Origin: Octopus sinensis
Lineage: Eukaryota
NCBI RefSeq assembly: GCF_006345805.1
Contig: NW_021823588.1
Span: forward strand, 1-21,827
Direction of reading: 5' to 3'
Length of the DNA: 21,827 nt
Made by a program: the position numbers and the translations under genes. Under the pieces are notes generated by a model. The model did no database searches, was not told the DNA's origin, and saw only the letters and a list, made by a program, of their open reading frames with translations. This document shows, piece after piece, positions 1 through 19,904 of the stretch (its first letter is position 1; each line of letters opens with the position of its first letter).

Positions 1-1251
1 GCGGGACACAAGGTACGACGGTCAGGCGGTAATCGAGGACGGATGCGATTGTACGCGTTCGCCCACTCCGCCCGGCCTTTTAGAGACAGCTTTCTCTCGG
101 CCCATGTTTGGCTGAGAGCGACCACTCGTGATCTCGTCCCAGTTCTGATCCATTGAGGTCCGGACTGAACCAAACGCCGAGCAATTTAACCGGTCCGTCC
201 GTCCAGCGTCCCACTATTGAGCCGCAGTCGGACGGCATGGGTTTGCTTCTCCAGGTGCGGAGTAGCAAACTGACTTTTCCGGGTTAATTTTCGCTCCTGT
301 CACCGTTTCGTAGTTTCTTAGTGTCTCGCCTATCATCTGGATGTGTTTGTCGCTCGACACTATGACGGTGACATCATCCGCATATGCCGATACGCTCGTC
401 CCGCAACCCAGTTCCCGTGGGATGCCCCAGCGCCGCCAGCTTCCGTAGTAGCAGCTCGAGAGTCAATACATACAGAAACGCCAGACAGGGGACGCCCCTG
501 ACGGATCGACGCGAACGCGTGATGTCAAACGGTTTCGACAGGTGGACCGTTCACCCGAATCACCGATAGGATGCCGCTATACAAGGCAGCGATCCACCGC
601 GGAAGACGGGACCGAAGCCAGTCGCCCTGAGGAGGCGCCAAGTACCGATGGTCGACCCTATCGAAGGCTTTAGACTGATCCAAATTGATCAGTGCCCCAC
701 CCATGGCAGGATCCTTAACTACCCTATCCACAATGTAGCGCATCAGATGGAAGTTGTCATGTATGGTTCTGCCCGGCACAGCGCATGTTTGCGACCAGTT
801 TACCAATGACAATCGCCAACCTCTCGGCTATTACTTTAGCCAAAATTTTCAAATCTGCGTTGAGCAGAGTGATGGGCCTGAAATTATCTATAAAATTCCC
901 CTTGTTTGGGTCTTTCTTCAGCAACGTCACTGCACCTCGTCTCACGAAACCGGGGATTCTCCAGTTTTGTTGCCAGTTGCAGTAGACTAATGCCAAGAGG
1001 TCGCCAAACAAGTCTGGCATTTGACAATACAGCTCGTAGGGTAAACCATCCAATCCAGACGACTTATCCCTCGCGCAGCCCGCCATCGCATCCCGCACGT
1101 CAGCGGCTATGATGGGACTTTCACAACACTCCGCTTGTCTTGCCGAGAGCCGCGGCATGTCGGTCAGGTAGACACTGTAATCCATCCCGCGTTCCGACCC
1201 ACCACTCGCACCAAACAGTCGAGCAAAGAAAGTGCTGTTGAAAGGCCTCAC
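1..1251 (-). pseudogene. Reverse transcriptase domain of ORF2, copy A (frameshifted)
   Basis: Motifs GLDGLPYELY, NFRPITLLNADLKILAKVIAERL, INLDQSKAFDRVDH, SIRQGRPLS and AYADDVTVI (YADD at 373-384) match non-LTR RT consensus. Confidence 0.93.
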
Positions 1252-1607
1252 ACATCCTTTCGGGCTCGAGTAAACTGCATCCCTGTTGATCTATTAGAGA
1301 CCGAATGGTGGCTCTGTTGCCACGTTGCGCCTCCGCTACACGGGCCTCTCGCACAGCTTCGATCCCTTCATTCCTTAAGGCACGCATTTTAGCACTGACG
1401 ATGCAACCCTCGTGCTTGGCGTTGAGGTGTTGGTCGAGGGCCATCCTCGCAGTCAGCACGCTGGTTGCACTGCCAGTGGTAAGTGTCTCTTCTAGTTTCT
1501 TAACCAGGTCTCCCTCTACTCTATTTCGTTCTATCGCTAATTCCTTGCTGCTAAACCTAAATGATTCCGATTTTATTGCCATTTTCAGGGCGTACCACCA
1601 GCGGTTG

Positions 1608-2342
1608 TTAACGACGGCTCTCGTCAGCCCCTCTAATTAACTCGCTAATCCGGTTCCTGAAAACCTGTCGCGCTAAGAGCGACGTGTTCAGTTTCCAGTA
1701 ACCGGGATCCTGTCTATGTGTCTTATCTAAGTCGAGCGTACACGTCACAAATTTGTGATCTGTGTAGATGACTATTTTAAATTGTGGACATCCTACACTA
1801 TCCCTATCCGCTGTCCTGTCAGACAAATGGAAACGTCTGAGTAGGTCTTTGAGGCACTTACACCTCCTTCTATTCCTATCCATTCCCAGATAATCTAGAT
1901 GCGTGTCCAAGGTAGCGCTCCAATCCCCTACTAACAGTAAAGGTCTAGATGTACCCGGGAAAACCTCTAGACGTATGAAGAAATCCGCCCGACCTGTTAA
2001 GGACAGTGCATAAACTGCCATCAGACGGAATGCACACCCATTTCTGCCATCCACGTCCAAGACAACCAGCCCCGTGTCTAGGAATATTGTTCTTACTTTT
2101 ACATTTAGACTCTTTCGAAAAAGCACCGCGGTACCTCCACCACACATGTTCGACAGACAGGGAGAAAAATAAATGTCGAATTGATTGCCAAACATGGACG
2201 CGAGGGCCCGCGGCTTGCTGACTCTGGTTTTACTGATTGCTACTATATCCATGTTCAGTGACTTGATGTCGTTTAGAAGGTAACCTTGTTTCCAAGCCGA
2301 CGCCAAGCCACGTGCATTCACACAACCTAATTTAAGCATCAT
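1608..2342 (-). pseudogene. APE (exonuclease/endonuclease/phosphatase) domain of ORF2, copy A
   Basis: N-terminal CVNARGL, DIVAISKTR (E to K), LLLVGDWSA (GDFN-like), TDHKFV (SDH-like) and GYWKLNTSLL, the typical L1/Tx1 endonuclease end. Confidence 0.92.
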
Positions 2343-2348
2343 TGACGT

Positions 2349-2765
2349 TTACGAAAATTGTGTTTCACACACTACATTGGAAGAGACAAGAGGCAAGAGG
2401 GAAAGTGACTTACTCATTTCGAAAGTTTCAGTTTTTTCTTCATCTTTTGTAGTTTCTTTGAGAGGTGTTGAATAGTTTTTTGAGAGATATTTTTGAAACC
2501 CGCCTACCGCATTTGGAAATATGGTTTTCAGTGTGTGGTGTTGTGTTTGTGTTATGTGTACAATTCTTATGTGTTTCGGTGGAGTGGTGCGCGGATGATT
2601 ATTGGTCTTAAAGTCATCTTCGCAGATGTCCTTGTTGGATGCAATGTAATCCATTAATTTTTTATTGTCTGTGTCTATTGCAGTTAGTTGTGTGTGTAGT
2701 TTTTCGGGGTCATTGATTTTTGATTGTCTAAGGGGATGCTGTCCGGGGTTAAATATCTCTCTGCT
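2349..2765 (-). pseudogene. Probable C-terminal remnant of ORF1, copy A
   Basis: About 139 open codons ending in TAA 6 nt before the ORF2 ATG. Assigned by position only; no recognisable motif. Confidence 0.5.
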
Positions 2766-2780
2766 TTACTTACTTGTTTG

Positions 2781-2882
<102 letters not shown>

Positions 2883-4176
2883 TGTTTCTTTATTAGCCAC
2901 ACGGGGCTGCACACAGACAGAACAAATTACAAGGTAGAGCTTTTCTTTTGGGGAAAGAAAAAAGGTGGGGTAGGTTTTCGAGCAAAAGGGATCGTAAAAT
3001 GGAAAAAAGAAAATAAAGTGAAAAAGGAAAAGAAACAAAAGAAAAAAAACGATCAATAGGGATCGTGTATCACAGTGTCATGATGTACGGTGTAAAGGAG
3101 GAAGCAGTTAGGGTTTATGCGTGGGAAGAAAAGCCTACGAAAAATACCACCGTAACCTCGGTCAATATTGTAATATGTTACTACATTTGTTTGCAAGTGA
3201 GTAACCCTCTGTTTTCAATTTCTGCGTTCATAGGATTATGCTCAAGGTGGCTTCGTCATTCATACGTGCCATCCTTTCTACATTCATCCATCTTTTTTTG
3301 AAACATTCGCTAGACAAAAGTTGCCTCTCTACTCTCACTTTCTTGTTCAAGTGATACTTGAAGAAGTTGATGAGAGATTGACCAGAGAGGAAAGTGTTTG
3401 TCTCTAATCCTTTGAGGCGCGTCCACCACATACATTCTTTCGCCATAGCCACAAGGATGATGAAAATAGCTCTTCCTTCCCGTTTGAAGGAAGGAGGCGT
3501 GACGATATTGACGATAGACTCGGCTGATAAACAAACTCGTCCCACAGGTGACAGCAGTTGTTCGACATAAGCCCACAGGTCGGAAATTGTTGGACACTGC
3601 ACGAGTGCGTGCAGAACGGTTTCGTCGCTCTTGCCGCATCTCGGGCAGGCCGGACCCGTGTTTCTCGCTCATGTCTGTAGAGCTTATCCCGAACAGATAG
3701 CGCTTCTCGGTAGTACTGCCAGGCCAGGGATCTCTGGAAGTTGTCCATGGGCCCTGGTCCGAAAGTTGTCCTGAACAGGCGGGTCAGGTATTCCTCGTCG
3801 ACATCCAGGTTCTCCCCGAGCTCGTCGTCGTACCTCCCTTCCACTAATCCCCTATAGAATGCTTGGGTTGTGATGGAGTTACTCAGGGTCAACCCAGGAC
3901 GACAGAGTTGCTTAAGAGCAACGCGACACTCGCGGTGCCATTCGCCCTTCCTCGGCCTCTTTTTGATCCACGACTGCAGTTCGGTCATGGAGACTAGCTG
4001 CGGGAACGCGTGCCTCACAAACGGCGACCACACCTGTTCACCGTCGTCTACGAAGAACCTGAGATGTCGCAGTCCCAGCGCGTGTCTGCGCATCATCAAC
4101 CACGGCATGCCCAGTCCTCCTTTTAACGGGTGTTGACAGTAAATGGATCGCCTGACCATCGGGACGCATCATTTCA
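2883..4176 (-). mobile_element. L1/Tx1 LINE copy B: 5'-truncated, ORF2 C-terminus plus complete 3' UTR
   Basis: QHPLKGGLGMP motif; CCHC finger CPRCGKSDETVLHALVQC (3594-3647); stop at about 3228; U-rich 3' UTR ending GTGGCTAATAAAGAAACA followed by (TATC)n. Confidence 0.92.
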
Positions 4177-4330
4177 GATAGACAGACAGATAGATAGACG
4201 GGTAGATACATAGAAATATAGATAGAGAGAGGAGAGACAGAGAGGAGAGAGAGGAGAGAGAGAGAGACAGACAGACAGACATATAGATATATGTATAGAT
4301 ATGTATATATGTACATACATATATGTATAC

Positions 4331-4406
<76 letters not shown>

Positions 4407-4429
4407 ATATATATAATATTACGTATATG
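4177..4429. repeat. Compound microsatellite: degenerate (GATA/GACA)n, (GA)n, (TA)n
   Basis: Read directly. Confidence 0.95.
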
Positions 4430-4447
4430 ATATGTTACAATTACTCG

Positions 4448-4520
4448 ATAGTCAAGATAAAACTCTGAGTTTCAGATGCCGAAGTGGGAATCCACGACAT
4501 CGCTTCGGTTATTTGTCTAT
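4448..4520 (-). ncRNA. Hammerhead-like motif, type I minimal (family A, left arm, decayed)
   Basis: Minus strand: ATAGACAAATAA-CCGAAGC-GATGTC..GGCATC-T-GAA-ACTC(A)GAGT-T-TTATCTTGACTAT. Core deviates at positions 4 and 9 and has one extra U before G12. Confidence 0.5.
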
Positions 4521-4874
4521 TTGAAAACTCTATGAAAAAATACCGTTATACAAAGGGAAATTACTCTGTTATAACTCTGCTTGCCTGCGTACTTATACAT
4601 CACTCGCATTTTACGCCATAAAAATTATATAAAAATACATAAAAAATATATTAAATATATATAAAAAATATATAAAAAGATATAAAATCTTCTTGGGACA
4701 TAACATAGAAAGCATGTTCTATCTGTTTTCTTTAGGGGACCAAAAACGTAACAGAAATTTAGTCACATGTGGGCATGAACTGAAAAGTTCTGTCCTTGTG
4801 TTTAGACATGTAGTAGGGTCTAAGCTGCTTTTCCAGATTAGCCATCTCTCCATGTCGCATAGACCGCACCTTCC

Positions 4875-5775
4875 ACCCAATGATAGACTAAGTTATATTA
4901 ATGTAGGTTCATGCCATCCCCCTATAGTATTCAAAAATTTAGTTAAAAATATTAGTAAGAGGATTTCTAGCCTCTCATCTGATAAGGACATCTTCAATAG
5001 CGTTGCCCCAGTTTATAATAAGGCTTTAAAAGATAGTGGTTTTAGCGAAAAAATAAAATATACACCCATTACTAGCCCAACAGTAAGGAAAAGGAATAAT
5101 AGAAATAGGAAGGTCATCTGGTTTACGCCCCCTTACTCACCCGAGGTGGCCTTCAATATAGGTAAATATTTCCTGGCACTGATAGATAGACATTTTCCAG
5201 TTAACCATACTTATAGGAAACTCTTCAATAGACACAATTTAAAAATTAGTTTTAGTTCCACTACTTATTTTAAAAACATAATCAAACATAACATACAAAA
5301 AACACAAGAAAACAGCTGTTCATGTAGGAATAAAGAATTGTGCCCGCTAAATGGAGCTTGCATGTCCAAGACCATCATATATGAAGCTACCGTAAACTCT
5401 ATGACCACTAAAGACACCGTTTCGACGAAGAAATACATGGGCCTTACAGAGGGTAACTTCAAGGCCAGGTTCAATAACCACACTTTGAGCTTTAGGCACT
5501 GGAACAAAAGAAAAGCGACACAATTATCTAATCATAGTTGGTCTTTAAGTGATAAAGGTGTCGATTATAACATACATTGGAAGATTTTGGCCAGATGTAA
5601 CCCCTATACCAACGGCAGCGGAAGGTGCGGTCTATACGACACGGAGAGATGGCTTATCTGGAAAAGCAGCTTAGACCCTACTACATGTCTAAACACAAGG
5701 ACAGAACTTTTCGGATCATGCCCATATGTGACAAAATTTCTGTTACGATTTTGGTCCCCTAAAGAAAACAGATAG
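4875..5775 (+). pseudogene. PLE ORF fragment: RT thumb/C-terminus, Cys linker and GIY-YIG endonuclease
   Basis: YINVGSCHPP, YNKALKDSGF, RKVIWFTPPYS, CSCRNKELCPLNGAC, IIYEAT...KKYMGLTEGNFKARFNNH, RCGLYDTE and CLNTRTELFGSCPY. Confidence 0.93.
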
Positions 5776-5963
5776 AACATGCTTTCTATGTTGTGTCCCA
5801 AGAAGATTTTATATATTTTTATATATATTTTATATATTTTTTATGTATTTTTATATAATTTTTATGGCGTAAAATGCGAGCGATGTATAAGTACGCAGGC
5901 AAGCAGAGTTATAACAGAGTAATTTCCCTTTGTATAACGGTATTTTTTCATAGCGTTTTCAAA

Positions 5964-6022
5964 TAGCCAGATAACCGAAGAGATGGTTTCGGCATCTGAA
6001 ACTCAGAGTTTTATCTTGGCTA
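5964..6022 (+). ncRNA. Hammerhead-like motif, type I minimal (family A, right arm)
   Basis: Helix I TAGCCAGATAA/TTATCTTGGCTA (11 bp plus a bulge), core CCGAAGA (5975-5981), helix II GATG/CATC, extra U, GAAA, helix III ACTC-A-GAGT, triplet GUU. Confidence 0.62.
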
Positions 6023-6393
6023 CCGAATAATTGTCACATATTATTTTACAGATAAATTTCCTCTATTTACATAATATTGAGGTCTCTTTCTTTCTTTCGT
6101 TATCTTACCGTTTTTACCAATATATATATATATATGTGTGTGTATGTATATAGACATATACATATATGTTAGATAGACAGTGAGAGGGAGAGGGAGACAG
6201 AAAGAAAAAGAAGAAGAGAAAAGAGAGAGAGAGGGAGACAGAGAGATGTATATGGAATTCAAAGTGGACAATGGCAAAATATGAAAAATGAACAAGTTAA
6301 GAAATAAATTTCGCAAAATATTTCTTTCTATATTTATAAATGCATACTTACACTTACACACACAAACATACACACACACATATATATATATAT

Positions 6394-6867
6394 GCAGGCA
6401 CGTCGCTCAGAGTTTATGGTATTGGATTGATGGTCGTAAGATTGTGGTTACGAATTCTGGACTGGAAGATGCGTTCCATTCTTGAGCAAAGCAATTAATT
6501 GCACCGGGATTCAGTCCCACTGCGTGGCACCTTGGGCAAGTGTCTTCTACTATAGCCTCGGGCCGACCAAAACTTTGGGAGTGGATTTGGTAGACGGAAA
6601 CTGAAAGAAGCCTGTCGTATATATATATATATATATATACATATATATATGCGTGTGTGTCTTAGTGTGTCTGTGTTTGTCCCCCTAGCATTGCTTGACA
6701 ACCGATGCTGGTGTGTTTATGTCCCCATTACTTAGCGGTGCGGCAAAAGAGTCCGATAGAATAAGTACTGGGCTTACAAAGAATAAGTCCTGGGGTCGAG
6801 TTGCTCGATTAAGGGCGGTGCTCCAGCATGGCCGCAGTCAAATGACTGAAACAAGTAAAAGAGTAAA
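6394..6867 (+). mobile_element. Two abutting tRNA-derived SINE fragments with CORE-like domain; the second has an internal (TA)(TG) tract
   Basis: A degenerate A/B-box head at 6394-6500 ending CTTGAGCAAA, then a B-box-like GGATTCAGTCCC, GGCACCTTGGGCAAGTG (resembles the CORE GTGACCTTGGGCAAG), and a GTAAAAGA-type tail. Confidence 0.7.
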
Positions 6868-7010
6868 GTGGGTTCACTCAGGTGGGAAAAATGAGCAATT
6901 CTGCGTCGGACCGGCGCCGGCAAGTTTATCAGGTAAATTTTGATGTCAGTTGCTAGAATGCTATTTTAATATCAATATTTCAACTGTCGGGAATTCAACC
7001 AGTAATTCTA

Positions 7011-8035
7011 AGTTCGATCAATATTATATGCGCGCGTAGATTTGTTTTTTAGAAATATATTTTACATAGAATTTTTCGGAACGAAAGGGCAAAATATCTT
7101 TAATAAAAGTTTGAAATTAAATAAATATTGCATTCATACACAACTAGTAGGACCCGTGAATATTTCAAGGAACTATTGGGAAACCGATTGCATTGCATCT
7201 CAAAACTTTATCCAAAAAATCTCCAGAAAATGGTGTACAGGTATATGAGACAAAATTTCATCCCATTTCCCAGCGAGCTACTTTGGCGACAGTCGTAGAG
7301 TTGTAGGATATTCCTGATTCTGCGTTACAAGTAATTCACGAAATTATTATTATTATTATTTTCTACTCAAGTACTATTAGCCTTTTAAAAGTTGATATAT
7401 AGTAATTTCGAGCATGACTGTTAATCTAATATTATTTATGATAGTTTGTTTATGACAACGCTCATTCGAAATTAAGCAAGTTGAAGACCCACATGTCTGT
7501 TTCAGAGTTCGATCAATATTATAGTCGCTCGTAGAACTTTTATTTCACTTAAGATTTGTTTCTTTTCAAATATATTTTGCATAAAATGTTTCAGGAGTAA
7601 ATGGCAAAATATCTTTTGAAATTAAATAGATATTTCATTATTACTCAACTAGCAAGACCCGTGAATATTTCAAGGAACTATTGGTAAACCGATTGCGTTG
7701 TATCTCAAAACCAGAAAAGGTGTACAAGTTTATGAAACAAAAATTTCATCCTAATTTCCAGCGAGCTACTTTGGCGACAGTCGTAGAGTTGTAGGATTGT
7801 TGTAATTCCGAGTGCGGTTGTTTTCCAGGTAGCTCGCGGAATTATTAATTTTTTTTTTTCTATTCAAGTATTATTAGCCTATTAAAAGGTGATACATAAT
7901 TATTTCTAGCATGAAGGTTAATGTATTATTCTTTTTATTAGAGTTTGTTTTTAAAAATGCTCACAGGAAATTTAGCAATTTGACGGCCGATATGTCTGAT
8001 TTAGAAAATTTATGGAATACTACACTCTGATTCTA
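7011..8035 (+). repeat. Tandem duplication, two diverged ~495-bp units (start at 7011 and 7506)
   Basis: Shared start AGTTCGATCAATATTATA, with identical 29-nt (7151-7179/7656-7684) and 40-nt (7270-7309/7758-7797) blocks. Confidence 0.92.
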
Positions 8036-8302
8036 CCAAGTATTCTGACAGATATGTGTGTGTATGTATACATGTATATATATTCGTCTATGTGATGTCG
8101 TTTATACTTTCTGTAAACCCAAGGAAACAAGTTCCCCTGGGGATACATAATATGCATGGGCGGTGGTACGTCATTGCATAAACTTGGCTTAGCCAATTCC
8201 ATCAACTCATGTTCTTCGTTTCCTGCTCAAATTATAAAGCTCGAATATTAGAGAGCAAAGAATATTTTAGCAGAATATTACTTTAAATGACGAAAATATA
8301 TA

Positions 8303-8524
8303 CCTATTTCTTTACTACCCACAAGGGGCTAAACACAGAGAGGACAAACGGATTAAGTCGATTATATGGACCCTAGTACCCCACTGGTACTTATCTAATC
8401 GACCCCGAAAGGATGAAAGGCAAAGTCGACCTCGGCGGAATTTGAACTCAGAACGTAACGGCAGACGAAAAACCGCTTAGCACTTCGCCCGGCGTGCTAA
8501 CGTTTCTGCCAGCTGGCCGCCTTT
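8303..8524 (-). mobile_element. tRNA-derived SINE, near full length (tail type A)
   Basis: Minus strand: A box TGGCAGAAACGTT, B box GAGTTCAAATTCC, central GTCGACTTTGCCTTTCATCCTTTCGGGGTCGAT (Nin/Deu-like domain). Further copies lie at 15147, 19905, 20572 and 20783. Confidence 0.85.
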
Positions 8525-9185
8525 GATGAAAATATATACCACGAAAGGAAAACATTATCAATGCAAAAACAACAGTACAATCTACGTATATATACATGTG
8601 TGTGTGTGTGTGTTTGTGTTTGTGTGTGTGCATGTGTGTCTGTGTGTTTCTCTGTGCGTACGTGTGTAAATCTATGGAACTGAGTAAAGTTTTATAGTCT
8701 ATATGTATACACCAAGTGATTTTTGCATGCGAGCAAGATTGCGTATACATATGTGTACATGTATTTGTGTGTATATTTTCGTTTTGCATTTATATGTCTG
8801 CATATGTATGTGGTCTGTGCACATCTATCTATGTATTTTGATGTATACATGTATATTGATGGTTTAGTATGAGTATATACTATTGTGAAATATTTTTTAT
8901 ATATTTTGATATATTTTAATTTCAATTTTTATGTATTATTTGTATTAATCGAATTATATTTTCTACATAATTAATGGCAATATGTATTTGAACCAAAGCT
9001 TCGATTTAAGGTTTTTCCTCGATTTTTATAATTTTATATTTTATATTGAACTCATTTATTTGTTTCGTTTAATTTTTGTTTATCGCTCGCATACGACCGT
9101 TATTCGAAAGGACCAATCACGCAAGTCCATTTTTTAAAGTGTAACGTTTAAACTGGTGTTGATCGAATTGCCATCTCGGTTCTAT

Positions 9186-9244
9186 TTTAACAAAACTGTC
9201 CGACGAACGGAAACGTGAAACTCCGAGTAACAGCTTTTGTTAAA
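9186..9244 (+). ncRNA. Hammerhead ribozyme motif, type I minimal (family B)
   Basis: Helix I TTTAACAAAACTGT/ACAG(C)TTTTGTTAAA (14 bp), core CCGACGA (9200-9206), helix II ACG-GAAA-CGT, GAAA, helix III ACTC-C-GAGT, triplet GUA (cut after 9229). Confidence 0.8.
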
Positions 9245-9259
9245 TATCTGCTGCTTTTA

Positions 9260-9299
<40 letters not shown>

Positions 9300-9301
<2 letters not shown>

Positions 9302-9623
9302 CGTAAGGGGTATCAGCCATCTGAATGTGGCTAGCCACTGGGGGGGTGTTACTGATGCTTACCATGCGTTGACGAGAGGCAATTACCTTGAAACTATAGT
9401 CCGTATGTAGTACTCGGTTCTTCGAGGGAGGATGACCTCCCTTTGCAAGTAACACAAGGACACTGAGATAGTGTCTAAAGTCCTTCTGGTGACGTTGATC
9501 GCCTGGGGCTAAAAGCATCAGTAACCCCCCCCCTCCCCAGTGGCTAGCCACATTTAGATGGCTGATACCCCTTACGTTGTCGAGCGGTTACTGTTTATAT
9601 CTCGTTCAGAGATTTATTATTGT

Positions 9624-9625
<2 letters not shown>
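9300..9625 (+). mobile_element. Small inverted-arm element, probably an extremely 5'-truncated PLE terminus
   Basis: Arm 9300-9360 is the reverse complement of 9513-9578. A hammerhead starts immediately inside the left arm, and (TA)n lies on both sides. Confidence 0.65.
9363..9407 (+). ncRNA. Hammerhead ribozyme motif, type I minimal (family C)
   Basis: Helix I CATGCG/CGTATG, core TTGACGA (C3U), helix II GAGG-CAATTA-CCTT, GAAA, perfect palindrome ACTATAGT as helix III, canonical GUC triplet (cut after 9401). Confidence 0.75.
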
Positions 9626-9659
<34 letters not shown>

Positions 9660-9819
9660 ATTATTATTTGAGGGAATAAAATCCAAACTTACAAGGATTT
9701 ATATATATATAATGATATGTATTTAGGGTGTTTATGAGTGTGTAAAGAAACAGAAGTAAAAATTTTAATATCTAAAATTTGATCCCTGTTTCCAATATAC
9801 GACTTTTGTGCAAAGATTA

Positions 9820-10440
9820 AATCTTCCGTCTAGGTACGATTGGGATTTCAAATTAAACGCTCTATACTAACAGAGAATTCAATATGTATTAGGATTTGTT
9901 CCGTCTGAAAGCAATATTTATTTAATTTCACAGTATTATTCAAGATATAATTTCATATATAAGCCCTGAAATTATTTATGCAAAATATTTTACAAAACTT
10001 AAGTGGAACAAAGATTTTACGTGCCTCTTTAATCTGAATTGAGCTCAAAATCGACAGATCAATTCTCGACAGATCTACTAAAGTAACACGTAGTCAACAA
10101 GCAGAAAATTTCACCTCGTAAATTTTCTCACTGTTCTATAATGATATGTTTACAGACGCGCATATACGCACAAATACGTATAAAGCACAAACAAACACTC
10201 ACACACACACACACACTCAGGTTCATACGGACTTGCATATAAACCCGCAATACAGTGCATGCACTCATGCACTCACATATATGGATATATACACATCTAT
10301 ACATACACTCACATATCTGAAAGAATAATCATGAAGTAGTTTTAATTCGTGAGAATTGCATTTTTTGAAATCACTTTCCATTCCATTTACTCTGGTTGAG
10401 TTGTCTTTCATACATTCACCTGGAAATCGTTAATTCATAT
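9820..10440 (+). repeat. Local diverged direct duplicate of about 11350-11770
   Basis: CTATACTAACAGAGAATTC occurs near 9862 and 11397; a CA-rich spacer and TTTACTCT..AGTTGTCTTTCATA block follow in both copies. Confidence 0.7.
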
Positions 10441-10651
10441 ACTACAAGACATCACGATATCGAAAACTTCAACAATCGTCAAAGCTTTCTTAAGATCTAC
10501 AGGTTGGCGGTGGAATCAGGGATTGCGGAATCAACAAGATCTTCGGAATGTTTAATGGATGACGGTAAAATGAAAACATTTTGCTTTCACAGCGTTGCCA
10601 CCATGACGGTGGCCGGTCAAAATTTAGCCTGAATGAAGAAGAGGAAATGAG

Positions 10652-10781
10652 CGTACATACATACATACATTATTACGTACGTACGTACATACATACATGC
10701 ATACATACGTACGTACATACATACATGCATACATACGTACGTACATACATATGTACGTACATACATACATACATACATACA

Positions 10782-10817
<36 letters not shown>

Positions 10818-10820
10818 TAT
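10652..10820. repeat. (TACA/TACG)n microsatellite
   Basis: Read directly. Confidence 0.95.
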
Positions 10821-10919
10821 GTATTTCTTTTCAATCTCATACCAGTTCCAGCTTTCGAATTGAAGTCATGTGATTGCGAAAGCGAACTGAACTTCGAAGC
10901 CATCCAGTCCCGAGAGCAC

Positions 10920-11110
10920 ACATAACATGCATGGCCGATGCTAAGTCATTGCATAAACGTGGCTTAGACAATTCCATCAACTCATGGACTCATGTCCTTC
11001 GTTTCGTACTCACATTATTAAGTCAGTTCAATCGATTTCTATTCTTGGTTTGGTTCTCACATTATAAGTTTCGAATCTTAAAAAGCAAACATTATTTTGG
11101 AAGAATGTAA
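10920..11110 (+). repeat. Direct duplicate of about 8145-8290
   Basis: CATAA(C/T)ATGCATGG..GTCATTGCATAAAC(G/T)TGGCTTAG(A/C)CAATTCCATCAACTCATG is present in both. Confidence 0.85.
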
Positions 11111-11151
11111 AATTTAAAAAAAAAGCAAAGTAGAATGTATATACACACACT

Positions 11152-11190
<39 letters not shown>

Positions 11191-11799
11191 ACACACACAC
11201 ACTTACACACACACATGTTTATATACATACATACATATAGTGATATATGTATTGTTTGTGTATGTGTGTATGTGTGTTAAGTTATACGAGTATGTAAAGA
11301 TTTAATGGCGATAATTTAATCCGTTTCCAACAAGTGGCTTTTGTCCAATGATTACAACCTCCGCCAACGTAGGATTCGGAGTCCAAATTAGGCATTCTAT
11401 ACTAACAGAGAATTCCGTCTGTCTTTGGATTTAGTGACAATAATTTCAATATTTATTTCAAATTATTAAAGATATCATTTTATCGTTTATTCCTGCGACA
11501 CACCACAAACATACACACATATTCTCGTACCCACGCATACTCATACGCACATGTGTATGTACAGGAAAACTAACACATAAGCACATATACAGACATAGAC
11601 GAATATATATACATGTATACATACACACGCATATGTAGGAGAATACTGGGAAACTAATCTTAACATCTGAAAATTGTATTTATTGCAATTATATTCCGTT
11701 TGATTGGCCTCCGTTGCTTTACTCTTAATAAGTTGTCTTTCATATAAGAAAAAAAATCATTCATCTCTATTACAGTCCGGTGTGTAATACACCGTACTG

Positions 11800-12098
11800 T
11801 TGGTAGAGTCATACTGTAGTATTCCGTAAATTTTCTAAAACTGACAACTTGCTAAATTCCTTGAGAGCATTGTTAAAACATACTAGTAAATATAATAATA
11901 CATATCCTTCATGCTCGAAATTACTATATATCAACTTTTAAAAGGCTAATAATACATGAATAGAAAAAAAAAATAATAAATTCGCTGGCTAATGGTGGAA
12001 AGTCGAACTCGGAATCACAAATATCCTACAATTCTACGATTTCTCCAAATAGCCTGCAGAGAATTTCGATGAAATTTTGTCTCATAAGCCTTTACACC
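11800..12098 (-). repeat. Inverted third copy of the 7011/7506 unit (3' half)
   Basis: The reverse complement contains TATGAGACAAAATTTCATC, TCGTAGA.TTGTAGGATAT and TATTAGCCTTTTAAAAGTTGATATATAGTAATTTCGAGCATGA, as in unit 1. Confidence 0.88.
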
Positions 12099-12289
12099 TA
12101 ACCCTATCTGTATGTTCACACACACACACATACATTCACATAAACATATATACAGATGCACACATGCACACACATCAAATGCATTGTTGCCAACTGCGTG
12201 AAAATGTCTTCCAGATATTTTCTACGGTGGTCGAAACAGCCTGGAAAATGGTAACTAAAAAGCAAGGGAAGTTGACCTTATTGAGATCG

Positions 12290-12545
12290 GTGAGTCAAAA
12301 GAATATTGATAGAACTTAGAGATTAAAACAGCCCCTAACTTATAACGCTCCCGGCCAGATATCGTTGTGAGGGAGCGCGATGAAGTTATATGTTATGTCC
12401 TGAAATGCATCCGCTCTCTGGAAACCATTATGTTTAGAAAAATGCAAGAGGAAGTGGATATCTGACGATCATTGATAAACGAGTTTGCAAATCAAACACG
12501 TAGGATACACTTTCAGTTTCATGCATACTACAACTGGAGCAACTG
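12290..12545 (+). pseudogene. Possible highly decayed restriction-like endonuclease fragment
   Basis: RPDIVVRERDEVICYVL (from 12352) resembles the RPD-x-V RLE motif; the rest is weak. Confidence 0.35.
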
Positions 12546-12800
12546 TGTGTATACATACATAAATACATACATACGCACAGACGGTTCATCAGGGAGACTG
12601 ACTGAGAAATACATGGTTAGACAGACAGAGAGATAAATAGATAGAGAGATAGATAGATAGATACATACATGCATACATACATACATGCATACATAAGTAC
12701 ATGTATTAGTAGTAGATTTCGATCAAGTTTTATATATATATATATATATATATATGAATGTATATATGTCGATATACATACATACACACATGCATACATC

Positions 12801-12867
<67 letters not shown>

Positions 12868-12875
12868 TATATATA

Positions 12876-13022
12876 CACCGGAGTAAGCACATAAATGTGA
12901 AACAATGTGAAAAAGAGTCTCCAATACCTGAGATAGAGTAATATGCTTTATTTCAAAACAGCAGAAAATATAACAAAAGCTGTTACTCAGAGTTTCACGC
13001 TTCCGTTCATCGAACAGTTTTA
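12876..13022 (-). mobile_element. Short PLE-terminus-like repeat carrying hammerhead family B (12975-13021), ending in (TA)n
   Basis: Reverse complement matches 9191-9265: AAAACTGT-TCGATGA-ACG GAAG CGT-GAA-ACTC(T)GAGT-A-ACAGCTTTT. Confidence 0.75.
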
Positions 13023-15897
13023 AATGTCCCACACGCGATAGCAGTCGTTCGACATAGGCTCACAGGTCGGAAATGGTTGGACACTACGAGTGTGTGCAGA
13101 ACAGTTTCGTCGCTCTGACCGCATCACGGGCAGGTCGGCTCCGTGTTTCTCGAGCCATGCATGTAGAGCTTATCCCGAACGGGTAGTGCTTCTCGATAGC
13201 ACTGCCAGGCTAGGGATCTCTGGAAGTTGTCCATAGGTCCCGGCCCGAAAGTCGTTTCAAACAGGCGGGTCAGGTATTCCTCGTCGACGCCCAGGTTCAC
13301 CCCGAGATCGTCGTCGTCCCTCTCCTCCCCTAATCCCCTTTTAGAAAGCTTTGGTTGTGTTGTAGTCGCTGAAAGTCGATCCGAGACAGCATAATTGCTC
13401 GAGAGCAACATGACACTCGGGGTGCCATTCGCCCTTCCTCGGCCTCTTTTTGATCCTTGACTGCAGTTCGGTCATTGAGACGAGCTGCGGGAAAGCGTGC
13501 CTCACAAAGGGCGACCACACCTGTTCACCGTCGGGAAAGCGTGTCTCGACGGTGAACATCACCGTCGCCTGAGATCTCGCAGTCTCAGCGCGTGTCTGCG
13601 CATGCCCAACCACGGCATGCCCAACCCTCATTTTAACGGGTGCTGATAGCAAATGGATCACCTGACCATTGGAACGCATCCTTTTCACAAGAAGCGGAAG
13701 AGAATGCGTTCCAGTTTGGTGATGGTAGGATCGGTACAAGGCACCACGGTCAGGCGGTAGTAGACGTTGGGCGCGATGTATGTGTTCGCCACCTCCGCCC
13801 GACCTTTCAAGGACAGCTTCCTCACAGTCCATTGCGAGAGTGACCACCCTACTCGTTATCTCCTTCCAGTTTTCTCCATTTGGAGGTCCGGACCAAACCA
13901 GACCCCGAGCAACTCGACCGGACCGTTGGTCCAGCGTCTCACGACGGAGGCGCTGGTGGTCGGTATGGGCTTGCTTCTCCAGCCGCAAGCCCACTGACTT
14001 TTCCCGGTTGATTTTCGCTTCTGTCACCGCTTCGTAGTCTTTCAGTGTCTCGCCGACCAGGTCAATGTGATTGTGGCTAGACACTATGACGGTGACGTCT
14101 TCCGCGTATGCAGACACGCTCGTCCCGCATCCCAGTTCTCGCGGGATGCCTCTCAGCGTCGCCAGGTTCCACACTGGTGGATCGAGAGTCAATACGTACA
14201 GAAGCGACGAGAGGGGGCATCCCTGGCGGACCGAACGTGCAATGTCGAAAGGTCTCGACATTGCCGCTATGAGAACAGCCTCCAATTATCAGTGGTCTAC
14301 CCAATCGAAAACTTTTGATTGATCCAAATACATCAGGGCCCCACACATGCCAGGTTCCCTAACTACCCTGTTTGTGATGTAGCGCATCAGATGGAGGTTG
14401 TCATGGATGCTCCAGCCAGGCACAGCGCACGTTTGCGCACAAAATCGGGGATGCTCCCATGTTGCTGCCAATTGCAGTACACTGGTGCCAAGACGTCTCC
14501 AGACAAGTTTAGCATACAACTTTAAAGCTCGTAGGGTAGACCATCCAAACACGGGGATTTGTCCCTCGAGCATTCTGCCATCGCGTCCTCCACTTCCGCC
14601 GCCGCGATGGCACCTTCGCAGCGCCCTGCTTCTCTTGTCGAGAGTCGTGGCAGGCTGTGTAGGTAAGCACTGAAGTCCACCCTACGTTCTTGCCCGCTAC
14701 TCGTCCGGAACAGTCGGGCAAAATGCTGTTGAAAGGCCTCACACATTTTACTTGACTCGAGCAATTCACGCCCCTGTTCATCTACCAGAGACTGAATGGT
14801 GGGTCTGTGGGCCTGCTGCGCCCCAACCGTGCGGCCCCAACACCTCCGTCCCTTAGAGCACGCATCCTAGCTCTGACAACACACCCTTCGTGTTTGGCTT
14901 TGAAGTGTTGGTCGAGGGCCAACCTCGCCACCAAAACGTCGGAAGCGATGCCACTCCTTATTGCCTCTTCTAGCTTCTTAACTAGCTCATCCTCTACTCT
15001 ATTTCTATCTGTGGCTAGTGCTTTGCTGTACCTAATCGCTTCTACTTTCATTGCTCTCTTGAGAGTAAACCACCATTTGTTGTTGATGATGGCTCCCGTG
15101 AAAGCCCTCTTTGCTAGCGTCCTAATCCGGTCTCTGAAAACTTGTCTCTTTATTGCTGACAAGGGGCTAAACATAGAGGGGATAAACAAGGTCAGACAAA
15201 GGGATTAAGTCGATTACATCCACCCCAGTACGTAACTGGTACTTAATTTATCGATCCCTAAAGGCTGAAAGGCAAAGTCAAACTCGGCGGAATTTGAACT
15301 CAGAATTTGAACCCAGCGAAAGACGTCTTTAGTTTCGAGTACCCGGGACGCTGCCTATGTGTCTTATCTAAGTCTAGCGTACACGTCACAAGTTTGTGAT
15401 CCGTGTACCTGACTATGTGGAATTGTGGACACCCTACGCTATCTCTATCTACAGTATCCTATCTTGTTACGATCTCGATGACCTGATGTGGTTGCTCCAT
15501 GTCCACGTTGGTACATTTGGGTGGTCGAGTCGGTACCTGTCACACAATTGAAAGCATCTAAGCAGGTCTCTGAGGCATTTGTATCCCCGTCTAATCCTAT
15601 CTCTGCCCACGTAGTCTTCATGCGTGCCCAAGGTAGCATTCCAGCCCCCCACAAAAAGTAATGGGCGAGACGTTCCCAGGAAACCTATAGGCGTCGAAAG
15701 ATAACCGGCCTACCTGTTAAAGGTGATGCGTAGACTGATATGAATCGAAAAGCGGGCCCTTTGCTGCCGCCGACATCCAGGACGACCAGTCTACCCTTCA
15801 GTTCTGCGAATATTGTCTTTACTTCGAGACCCAGACTCTTCAGAAAAAGTACCACCGTGCCACTACCTGTCTCTGCAGACAGGGGAAAAAAAAATAT
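13023..15897 (-). mobile_element. L1/Tx1 LINE copy C: most of ORF2, truncated at both ends, internally deleted, interrupted by a SINE
   Basis: Endonuclease (LLFVGGWNATL, PTWTWSN), RT (PCLDGLPYEL, LDQSKVFDWVDH, SVRQGCPLS, AYAEDVTV) and CCHC finger. Collinear with copies A and B. Confidence 0.92.
15147..15312 (-). mobile_element. 5'-truncated tRNA-SINE (tail type A) inserted in LINE copy C
   Basis: Matches 8307-8455. It interrupts the YxKLxTS..RQVFRxRI segment, which is contiguous in copy A (about 1655-1705). Confidence 0.85.
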
Positions 15898-16060
15898 ATT
15901 CCTCTGTCTTCCCTCTCTGGATCTTTCCTTCTCCTGTGTTTCCGACGAAGAGCTCCGCTTGAAACGTTAACCCTCCTTCTTCCTTCTTCCTGAGCGTCCA
16001 TAATAATATTTTGTTCCACGTCCTCCGTTGTGTTTTTTGTGCTTTCATGTTTGATTAACT
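15898..16060 (+). mobile_element. Short PLE-terminus-like segment with hammerhead family D (15938-15971), running into (TA/CA)n
   Basis: GTTT-CCGACGA-A-GAGC TCC GCTT-GAA-ACGT-T-AAC. LINE homology stops at about 15897. Confidence 0.55.
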
Positions 16061-16136
16061 TATACACACACACATACACACACACACACATATACACACA
16101 CACACCATATATAATATATATACACACACACATATA

Positions 16137-16178
<42 letters not shown>

Positions 16179-16314
16179 TAGTATGTTGCATATATGAATA
16201 TACGTGTATGTATTTACGTGTATACATACGTACACACACATACACATACATATACACATGCATACTGACACATACACGCTTGCATACACAAATATGTATA
16301 AGCGTGTATGCCTT

Positions 16315-16345
<31 letters not shown>
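16061..16345. repeat. Compound (CA)n/(TA)n/(TG)n microsatellite
   Basis: Read directly. Confidence 0.93.
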
Positions 16346-16693
16346 GTGCATCTGGATGTAACGTATGAGTCTGAGATTCGCATGCCTTTCTTATAGATCA
16401 TTAGCTTCCTAAGTGGATGTCATTCATGATTTTAATCGTAATCGAAACAGGTTCGATGATATCTTTGAGCGGGACAATGGCCGCCTTACACGGACAGATA
16501 AACTCACACAGGCATTAATACTTACAGCATTGCTCACGCACAATACACCGCGCACAACGAACTCACTTACACGCTCATATGTTTTTAAGCACGTACGTAC
16601 ATATGTATGTGTACAAATGTATATACACATGCATATTCATATATAGAGTGAGTGTGGGAGAGACGGAGAGATGTAGTAGATAGATTCATGGAT

Positions 16694-16886
<193 letters not shown>

Positions 16887-16973
16887 CTTAGACTGATTGA
16901 TAGAGAGATATCGGGAGAGGCGAGTCATTAATTGATTTTCTTCTTTAATAGATACATGTTTATGTAATTACAC

Positions 16974-17031
<58 letters not shown>

Positions 17032-17260
17032 GTGTGTATGTATATATAGTTTATGTATGTATATTTATAAGTATTATATGTACATATGTAGGCTCACTCT
17101 CACACAGGCATTCACGTGCGCGTGCCTTTTTTAGTTTCTTTTTTGTATGGATTTTTTCTGTGCCTTTATGAGATTATTAACTTATACACGTAAAGCACAT
17201 ATAATGGCCTTTTATAGCACGGCAGAGAGTGCAGTAAATATAATAAACAATAGATAAACA

Positions 17261-18547: not shown

Positions 18548-19020
18548 TGGTATAACCAATAACCTAGTAAAGTACTAGAAGTAGGAATACAAGACGTCGT
18601 GGGACCTTAACATTTAGACTGACAGAGTAATAGGAACCAGAAGGCCTGATTTGGTAGTAGTAGATAAAGAGAATAGAAAGTACCAGATAATAGACTTTCC
18701 AATCCCAAATGATGAAAGCATTAATATAAGAAGTATAGAAAAAATAGCACAGTACAAGGACCTAGCCATTGCATTACAGGGACTATGGAAAGTTCGGGTA
18801 AAATGTATTCCTGTAATTATAGGTGCATTGGGAATTATCACTAAAGATCTGAACAAATTGATAGAGGAAATAGGCATAAAACCCAATTTACTGCAGCTGC
18901 AGAAATCGGTGTTGTTAGGCTTAGGGTTAGGATACTTAGGATGGTTCTTTGCCATCTAAGGTTATGATGTTAGGATTCTTTTCTTTTCCAGCAGTCTAAT
19001 CTGTTGAGTGTATATGAATA
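18548..19020 (+). mobile_element. 5'-truncated RLE-type non-LTR retrotransposon (R4/Dong-like), endonuclease C-terminus plus short UTR
   Basis: WDLNI*TDRVIGTRRPDLVVVDKE..IIDFPIP..EKIAQYKDL..LWKV..PVIIGALG..LQKSVLLG is a PD-(D/E)xK RLE. (TAA)n lies on both sides. Confidence 0.88.
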
Positions 19021-19072
19021 GATAATAATAATAATAATGATAATAATAATAATAATAATAAATAATAATAAC

Positions 19073-19109
<37 letters not shown>

Positions 19110-19200
19110 TAATATAATAATAATAATATGATAATAGTAATAATAATATAATAATAATAATAATATAATATAAAATAATAATAATAATATAATAATTATA

Positions 19201-19252
<52 letters not shown>

Positions 19253-19284
19253 TAATAATAAAATAATGTAATAGTAAAATAATA

Positions 19285-19325
<41 letters not shown>

Positions 19326-19345
19326 TGATGATGATGATGATGATT
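19021..19345. repeat. (TAA)n followed by (GAT)n microsatellite
   Basis: Read directly. Confidence 0.97.
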
Positions 19346-19904
19346 GACATGAGATGATGATTCTTGATGCATAGCAGGTACTGGCTTCTGATCTTAACTG
19401 ATCGGAAATGATATCATGTTCATGTTTTGTCTTGATATAAAAGATGGGCTACAGCAAATATTCTGCTCAATACCACAGATTTGCTTGTCAGTTGTTTGAC
19501 TTTAACCAGTTGAGCATGTCCCTTAGTGGCTGACGATATGTGCATCTCTGATCACGAGCAGAAGTAGTGGGGGAGCATCATAGCCATGTGTTGAGAGGGA
19601 TTCTTTGGGGTTTGAATAATTCACCTCAGGAAATGCGGGTGTTTCGTTCATCATCCTTAAACAACCCTTATCCAGGGATCTTTTGAGCGGGATGGGCTAC
19701 TCGACCAGAAGAAAATTCTAATTGTGCCCCACTTGCAAGATCAGGCGCTGTTTATTTTGATATGAGATCACCATGTCATGCACACATGATTGTGATGCAT
19801 GTGCCCTTATCAGACGGGTAGTCATGATGGGTATATTGGGCTTCGTATATTTTACCCGTGTCACTTTGATGGCATGCACTGCTCTCTCACTCAATAATAA
19901 TAAT
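19346..19904 (+). mobile_element. Non-coding, (AAT)n-tailed segment; probable long 3' UTR of a non-LTR element
   Basis: A GC-richer complex block with no ORF, bracketed by trinucleotide arrays and ending CTCACTC(AAT)n. The family assignment is an inference. Confidence 0.4.

Follow-up and report, generated by a model that had tools for sequence, protein, structure and literature searches.

The window analyzed here, 21,827 nucleotides of Octopus sinensis DNA (RefSeq assembly GCF_006345805.1, contig NW_021823588.1, positions 1 to 21,827, forward strand), carries six minimal type I hammerhead motifs, M1 to M6 (Table 1). They are the 3'-terminal motifs, of the pseudo-long terminal repeat (pLTR) type, of four families of (TA)n-targeting Penelope-like elements (PLEs), referred to below as families A to D. 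Read directly, all six motifs show the strand order helix I, 7-nt core, helix II, GAAA, palindromic helix III, U-H and helix I', in agreement with an earlier note on this DNA, which had placed hammerheads at these six sites. GAAA is followed in each by an A...U palindrome, H17 is U, A, C or U and never G, and G12, A13, A14 and the A15.1-U16.1 pair are in place. As the earlier note had also stated, helix III is self-complementary throughout, reading ACUC-A-GAGU in two motifs and ACUC-C-GAGU, ACUC-U-GAGU, ACUAUAGU and ACGU in the others, and position 4 of the core is C in five of the six, M4 being the exception. Helices I and II are wholly different among the four families, yet complementary in each. 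Because helix III is unable to close in a monomer, cleavage, if any, requires two copies paired through the palindrome.

Table 1. Hammerhead motifs, element copies and other features of the window (positions of the core are given in the direction of the motif).
Feature	Position	Strand	Core	Description
Family A, inverted fragment	4400-4570	-		Holds M1; 5'-truncated 3'-terminal fragment ending in (TA)n; same repeat as 5920-6040, opposite orientation
M1	4448-4520	-	CCGAAGC, 4508-4502	A9 decayed to C in this copy; family A consensus CCGAAGA
Family A, ORF fragment	4693-5775	+		360 aa; post-RT region, CxCX5C linker, GIY-YIG endonuclease core
Family A, 3' UTR/pLTR	5920-6040	+		Holds M2 (sequence, descriptor)
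M2	5964-6022	+	CCGAAGA, 5975-5981	Copy without the inner hairpin of helix II
Family B, 5'-truncated copy	9140-9261	+		Holds M3; subfamily b5; adjoins (TA)n at 9262-9302 (sequence, descriptor)
M3	9186-9244	+	CCGACGA, 9200-9206	
Family C, inverted 3'-end fragment	9303-9360	-		Head-to-head with the next + copy; 9513-9575(-) matches 9303-9360(+)
Family C, 5'-truncated copy	9361-9575	+		Holds M4 (sequence, descriptor)
M4	9363-9407	+	UUGACGA, 9369-9375	U4 present; U replaces C at position 3
Family B, decayed copy	12950-13021	-		Holds M5; subfamily b4; U-loop helix III (sequence, descriptor)
M5	12975-13021	-	UCGAUGA, 13013-13007	C4 present; C3 decayed to U
Family D, part of repeat	15899-16040	+		Holds M6 (sequence, family consensus)
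M6	15938-15971	+	CCGACGA, 15942-15948	Helix I of just 2-3 bp
LINE-type fragment	757-4159	-		
LINE-type fragment	13341-15208	-		
ORF	18651-18959	+		102 aa
Low-complexity open frame	18970-19350	-		
Microsatellites	4276-4400, 6080-6390, 8450-8820, 9262-9302, 10650-10820, 11180-11290, 12650-12860, 16020-16400, 16950-17040			

A relaxed descriptor (YYGANGA, helix II of at least 3 bp, GAAA, palindromic A...U helix III, H17, helix I of at least 5/6) found four motifs in the window, M2 to M5, against none in 200 dinucleotide shuffles; it misses M1 by the A9C change alone and M6 by its short helix I alone. Matches to GAAACTCNGAGT with at most one mismatch numbered six, against 0.30 expected. Genome-wide, where all counts cover the 2.72-Gb O. 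sinensis genome, the pattern CCGANGA-N(6-36)-GAAACUCNGAGU was matched 8,474 times and its CUGANGA counterpart 7,218 times, against 0 and 4 matches for the reversed-pattern controls. That the motifs are chance resemblances within AT-rich repetitive DNA is ruled out by these three controls, and we consider its probability practically nil; compensatory changes in helix II and a canonical-core version of the same architecture downstream of homologous open reading frames (ORFs) in other samples, both described below, speak against chance as well. What might have favored chance is that the Rfam hammerhead models gave no match, at the gathering score or at E ≤ 10, in the window, its sub-windows or canonical-core sister loci. 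However, Rfam is likewise blind to sister copies with a canonical core (L092, L094 and L095), so its silence is uninformative about C4: it is the minimal architecture, not C4, that accounts for it.

M1 and M2 are one repeat, found in (-,+) order around the family A ORF fragment, and such head-to-head order is typical of PLE insertions. Family A thereby has the pLTR-like arrangement of partial tandem or inverted, 5'-truncated copies, and inverted pairs also occur genome-wide. In its ORF, the linker C209-x-C211-x5-C217 is read as C209-S-C211-RNKEL-C217 and the GIY-YIG core as IIYEA...KYMGLTEGNFKARFNNH, with no Cys between IIYEA and KYMGLT, i.e., without the CCHH cysteines; together with insertion at (TA)n, this is the combination that marks Hydra-clade PLEs. 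The ORF has 31 homologues (best E = 1e-68), the closest of which come from other samples and share 39-43% identity. The Cys columns are invariant in their alignment, VGLYRDDGL and YIGLTxGNFKxR are visible, and sister copies carry a YKDD reverse transcriptase (RT) motif upstream. Where the ORF tail is retained, the stop codon lies ~200 nt upstream of the hammerhead core. An intact long ORF upstream of a C4 motif was found in none of 28 A copies, all of which are truncated or interrupted. Taken together, family A is probably an autonomous PLE with a C-terminal endonuclease, Hydra-clade-like as judged by motif signatures only.

The 3' ends of all four families lie at (TA)n, and the (TA)n tracts of the window are their insertion targets. 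Family B consists of short, mostly and variably 5'-truncated copies ending at (TA)n ~40 nt past the predicted cleavage site; about one-third of the sampled copies stand in (-,+) head-to-head pairs, 49-330 nt apart and always with the minus copy first, like M1 and M2. Family C is built from a 353-nt unit, inserted in (TA)n as more-than-unit-length copies with two or three hammerhead motifs at a spacing of 353-357 nt. The 3' end of the unit, ...GATACCCCTTACGTT, adjoins (TA)n, and strong self-pairing is predicted for the unit (-112.5 kcal/mol, z = -3.5); like retrozymes, it forms head-to-tail repeats within 170-400 bp, each with a type I hammerhead. Family D is a dispersed repeat with the consensus ...UAUGUUU CCGACGA A GAGC UCC GCUC GAAA CG U U AACCC. 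With its extra A after A9, its G10.1-C11.1 pair and ACGU as helix III, it is a textbook PLE minimal hammerhead except for C4.

Both the division into four families and the identification as terminal PLE hammerheads with a dimer-type palindromic helix III had been put forward in the earlier note, and both are borne out. Several observations nevertheless weigh against the PLE assignment. The Pfam GIY-YIG match has E = 0.046 for the ORF in the window and E = 0.003 for a sister copy (L050), both below the curated cut-off, and a PDB profile search with the family A ORF gave no match. Pfam searches of the ORFs found no RVT_1 in family A, just the sub-threshold GIY-YIG and a partial RVT_1 on the neighboring long interspersed nuclear element (LINE). 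For families B, C and D, which come without an ORF, membership among PLEs is suggested by their architecture, namely (TA)n targeting, inverted or partial tandem copies and minimal hammerheads.

Position 4 is one of the near-invariant nucleotides of the hammerhead core. The canonical core C3 U4 G5 A6 N7 G8 A9 is found in none of the consensuses of families A, B (subfamilies b2 to b5), C and D, which read CCGAAGA in A, CCGAYGA in B, UUGACGA in C and CCGACGA in D. The consensus of 30 A copies has C4, as has that of 30 B copies, and 69 of 72 family D copies carry it. To avoid fixing the core in advance, patterns anchored in the helices were also used with the core left open, and the first 100 of 6,124 B places and of 5,851 A places were sampled. 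In B, position 4 is U in 59, C in 39 and G in 2 copies, while the other core positions and those of GAAA are 96-100% canonical; in A, it is C in 53 and U in 47 copies, with the other core positions 95-99% canonical. Sister subfamilies with a canonical core, CUGAAGA (a4) and CUGAUGA (b1), thus exist in both A and B and coexist with the C4 subfamilies in similar numbers (7,218 versus 8,474). Family C (~350 copies in two subfamilies) always has UUGACGA, a departure at position 3 with U3 facing G8, and a CUGACGA relative was not seen. The families also vary at the base of helix II: family D has the G10.1-C11.1 pair (GAGC/GCUC), as does one C subfamily (CCUC), and in the U4 subfamilies of A the pair could form with one bulged C. 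G.U or an extra U takes its place in the C4 A subfamilies, and A.U, A.G or A.A in B.

C4 therefore became fixed in master copies, which handed it down to thousands of insertions; it is not copy decay. The earlier note had named a U4 consensus as the outcome that would reduce C4 to decay; the consensus is C4 in A, B and D. Its proposal of a shared C4 core departure stands for these three families, whereas family C differs at position 3 and not 4, and its expectation that descriptors based on CUGANGA would miss C4 copies is supported.

In lineage A, U4 is ancestral and C4 derived, because the closest outgroup PLEs carry CUGAAGA or CUGAUGA and the U4 copies are old and diverse. Downstream of the stop codon of family A-homologous ORFs, three CUGANGA minimal hammerheads are present in ENA ERZ25878340 (L115), CUGAAGA-U-UGUA GAAA UACA-U-GAAAC... 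with (TA)n next to it in ERZ23499590 (L120), and CUGAAGA-U-CGGG AGUAA CCCG-U-GAAAC ACAC-U-GUGU in ERZ907985 (L121). No plausible hammerhead candidate was found in five further loci from sample ERZ21867824 (L114 and L116 to L119), and in a locus from another sample (L122) CTGAAGA is present with no GAAA nearby. The contigs of L115, L120 and L121 come from other samples, some of them labelled marine metagenomes, and look like animal DNA in metagenome assemblies; their motifs have U on both sides of helix II (U10.1.U11.1).

Helix II of family A bears on both age and structure. The 44 U4 copies contain 41 distinct helix II sequences, compared with 19 among 51 C4 copies, 26 of which are identical: the C4 copies are a young, homogeneous burst, and the U4 copies an old and diverse set. 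In the U4 copies, helix II is 78% paired, versus 36-39% with the partner shifted, and compensatory changes occur from U-A to C-G at pair 11 (22 versus 9, with 8 U.G) and from G-C to A-U at pairs 7 and 12, as illustrated by GUGG/CCAC versus GCAG/CUGC. The covariation of helices whose absence the earlier note would have counted against the motifs is thus present in helix II. Intermediates in A lead from GGCGGCG to GGUGGUG, then from U4 to C, and then from CCUCGG to CUUCGG together with C to U beside G12.

The earlier note had further argued that a change from UG to CG runs opposite to the decay of methylated CpG. This holds in lineage A, where the change is from U to C. In B, on the other hand, C4pG5 to U4pG5 is the direction of decay, and CCGACGA differs from CUGAUGA by two CpG deaminations. 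Both the U4 subfamily b1, which makes up half of the B sample and is near-identical, and the C4 subfamilies b2 to b5 are young, and the dating of U4 against C4 in B from 31 flanked copies is too noisy to be read (variable 5' truncation, small samples and biased sampling of b5). A canonical CUGANGA has been regained by C-to-T at C4pG5 in 3 of 72 D copies and in single b4-type copies, so that in C4 families CpG decay makes canonical cores from non-canonical masters.

Helix III is identical in A and in B subfamilies b1 to b3 (ACUCAGAGU), and its U-loop version (b4, M5) is the exact reverse complement. Duplex prediction gave -14.5 kcal/mol for the A-loop with the U-loop, -9.8 kcal/mol for the A-loop with the C-loop, and -9.4 to -9.9 kcal/mol for the A-, C- and U-loop homodimers. 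Cross-family pairing of A and B would thus be thermodynamically possible on paper, and the suggestion that the two families could heterodimerise is supported at the level of predicted energetics (-14.5 versus about -9.5 kcal/mol). In dimer and minimum free energy (MFE) folding, an intermolecular helix III is predicted for all families and a full hammerhead dimer for b1, with competing pairings for the other families, the helices being too short for such folding to decide.

We favor the reading, which we hold to be fairly probable, that U4C weakens the dimer-dependent PLE hammerheads and is tolerated in them. U4C, and likewise C3U in family C, would lower the activity of a ribozyme that is already weak, dependent on dimers and possibly assisted by protein. 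The change would be tolerated because PLE retrotransposition is probably neither rate-limited by hammerhead cleavage nor dependent on it, which would leave position 4 of master lineages free to drift from U to C and back as the elements go on multiplying. Published work offers several precedents. PLE pLTR minimal hammerheads work as dimers and have low activity in vitro (PMC4209133). In the Poseidon PLE, the catalytic mutants C3G/G8C have no effect on insertion in vitro, and the ribozyme needs the protein (PMC11167929). A natural viroid hammerhead with U4C is, as cited in PMC3088659, much less active in vitro yet viable in vivo, and Naiad PLEs thrive without canonical hammerheads (PMC8557442).

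The structure of the C4 clade of A points the same way. Pair 8 of helix II is lost (U.U) and 11.1 has changed from C to U. In addition, core nucleotides 3-8 (CCGAAG) of the C4 A subfamilies can pair perfectly over 6 bp with CUUCGG, which is part of the 3' strand of helix II; in the window, the sites concerned lie at 5975-5997 in M2 and at 4508-4475(-) in M1. In their U4 relatives, the corresponding CUGAAG/CCUCGG contains a wobble and a mismatch, and both U4C and the second C-to-U change strengthen the competing helix, which is the MFE structure for the A subfamily of the window and for M2, not for a1. With its weakened helix II and a helix that is predicted to sequester the core, the clade is no less consistent with relaxed constraint than with a new active core.

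Recurrence is the main argument against the favored reading and for an active variant: one U-to-C change became fixed in three unrelated families whose other core positions are all intact, which could mean that C4 is functional or even selected. In line with the inference of the earlier note that this lineage may use a U4C core, C4 would then be a fully functional, lineage-specific core variant whose dimers self-cleave at biologically useful rates, where a protonated C4 or a protein partner may replace the U-turn contact of U4, and C4 families would have been missed solely since searches require CUGANGA. We regard this as possible, though rather unlikely. The C4 subfamilies rank with the youngest and the largest, and in the core-free samples only positions 4 and 7 vary between subfamilies, G5, A6, G8, A9, G12 to A14 and A15.1 being canonical. 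The B subfamilies, however, differ by few positions per 84 nt, too close to reveal purifying selection on the rest of the core in C4 lineages; with subfamilies this young, an intact remaining core does not prove selection. Canonical U4 sister subfamilies, moreover, persist in equal numbers. Precedents cut both ways. The natural viroid hammerhead supports infectivity and one PLE hammerhead is protein-assisted (PMC11167929), but U4C "considerably decreases activity in vitro" in the sole natural case cited in PMC3088659, PLE minimal hammerheads are poorly active to begin with (PMC4209133), and the C4 clade of A has also suffered the change at 11.1, the loss of pair 8 and the perfect helix that sequesters nucleotides 3-8.

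A stronger proposal, which we consider unlikely, is that at least three PLE families of this one animal genome each fixed the U4-to-C change on their own because it is advantageous, or that C4 is an unrecognised, naturally active core class. The advantage could lie in an attenuated or conditional hammerhead, controlled by protein, pH or CCGAAG/CUUCGG gating, that spares the 3' end of the element itself from premature cleavage. If this were true, canonical CUGANGA ribozymes would be replenished continually across the genome as C4 copies undergo CpG deamination.

Conversely, catalysis may have been lost altogether in the C4 and U3 families, the motif being kept for a non-catalytic role and its likeness to a hammerhead being a relic. 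The palindrome could serve as a site of RNA dimerisation or template switching, or the PLE reverse transcriptase/endonuclease could use the region for recognition or as a structural element. Every family and subfamily strictly retains the helix III palindrome, the MFE favors the alternative hairpin for the A subfamily of the window, catalytic mutants leave PLE insertion in vitro unaffected (PMC11167929), and Craig et al. suggest that hammerheads may merely parasitise PLEs (PMC8557442). Nevertheless, we judge such a role improbable: no specific function of this kind is known for PLE hammerheads, the palindrome was fixed in the search patterns so that its conservation arises partly by construction, and the other catalytic nucleotides, needless for a pure dimerisation site, are all intact.

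Between these readings, tolerated weakening remains the one we prefer, and the genome holds the material for a comparison. With helix III types counted genome-wide, families A and B together provide more than 8,000 C4 copies beside U4 sister subfamilies of the same elements, including matched natural U4/C4 pairs (b1 versus b2 to b5, a4 versus a1 to a3). Should C4 dimers prove to cleave, hammerheads are under-counted by the accepted core consensus and by all CUGANGA-based genome scans. If they do not, the C4 families would be direct genomic evidence of PLE amplification without hammerhead catalysis, which bears on the purpose of the ribozyme.

The window has other repetitive features (Table 1). 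The two LINE-type retrotransposon fragments show an endonuclease-like N-terminus, a partial RVT_1 (E = 1.5e-6) and a common C-terminal region, and M5 lies ~320 nt from the second of them. The 102-aa ORF (...VIIGALGIITKDLNKLIEEIGIK...LQKSVLLG...) has no Pfam match and is possibly a retroelement remnant; it adjoins a His/Tyr/Ile/Leu low-complexity open frame of simple repeats. The microsatellites, of the types (TA)n, (TATG)n/(TACG)n and (GT)n, yield dozens of sub-threshold Rfam miRNA artefact matches (mir-297, mir-3149, mir-466 and others).

Overall, the motifs belong to the known class of PLE minimal hammerheads, with one family retrozyme-like; what sets them apart from those described is family-level C4 in three families and U3.G8 in one. 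A literature search that did not extend to Lunse et al. (2017) found no report of a family-level non-canonical core, nor of hammerheads in cephalopods or octopus. The motifs share with the PLE minimal hammerheads described by Cervera & de la Pena (2014, PMC4209133) their location in terminal repeats or the 3' region, a helix III that is absent or very short and palindromic, implying dimers, and thousands of dispersed, mostly truncated copies in consensus families, with opposite-strand pairs 100-700 bp apart. Family D also has their additional nucleotide following A9 and their G10.1-C11.1 pair. In contrast, the family-level core here is CCGANGA (A, B and D) or UUGACGA (C) and not CUGANGA, positions 10.1/11.1 in family B are A.U, A.G or A.A, and the core variant in the text of that study is a compensated U3-A8 only, whereas U3 of family C faces G8.

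Family A shares with the Hydra-clade PLEs (Craig, Yushenova, Rodriguez & Arkhipova 2021, PMC8557442) the C-terminal GIY-YIG, the CxCX5C linker, the lack of CCHH cysteines, insertion at (TA)n and a hammerhead motif close to its 3' end. It differs in that its young subfamilies carry C4, and its membership is by motif signatures only. Family C resembles the animal non-LTR retrozymes (Cervera & de la Pena 2020, PMC7229834; Li, Clavereau & Pollet 2026 preprint) in its unit length of 353 nt, within their range of 170-400 nt, in head-to-tail repeats each with a type I hammerhead, in strong predicted self-pairing and in coexistence with autonomous PLEs. Unlike in those retrozymes, its arrays comprise just two or three units flanked by partial units and (TA)n, its core is UUGACGA, and no loop-loop tertiary contacts were identified in it.

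The viroid hammerhead that Perreault et al. (2011, PMC3088659) cite likewise has C in place of U at core position 4, and in the literature consulted natural U4C is described for this one viroid variant only. It is a single sequence variant in an RNA replicon whose hammerhead is full-size, whereas C4 is here the consensus of three DNA-encoded retroelement families. Finally, the Naiad and Chlamys PLEs (PMC8557442) are likewise successful, high-copy, (TA)n-targeting elements without a canonical hammerhead core. Naiads, however, have an N-terminal endonuclease and no recognisable three-helix motif, while the families described here keep all of the architecture but one core base.

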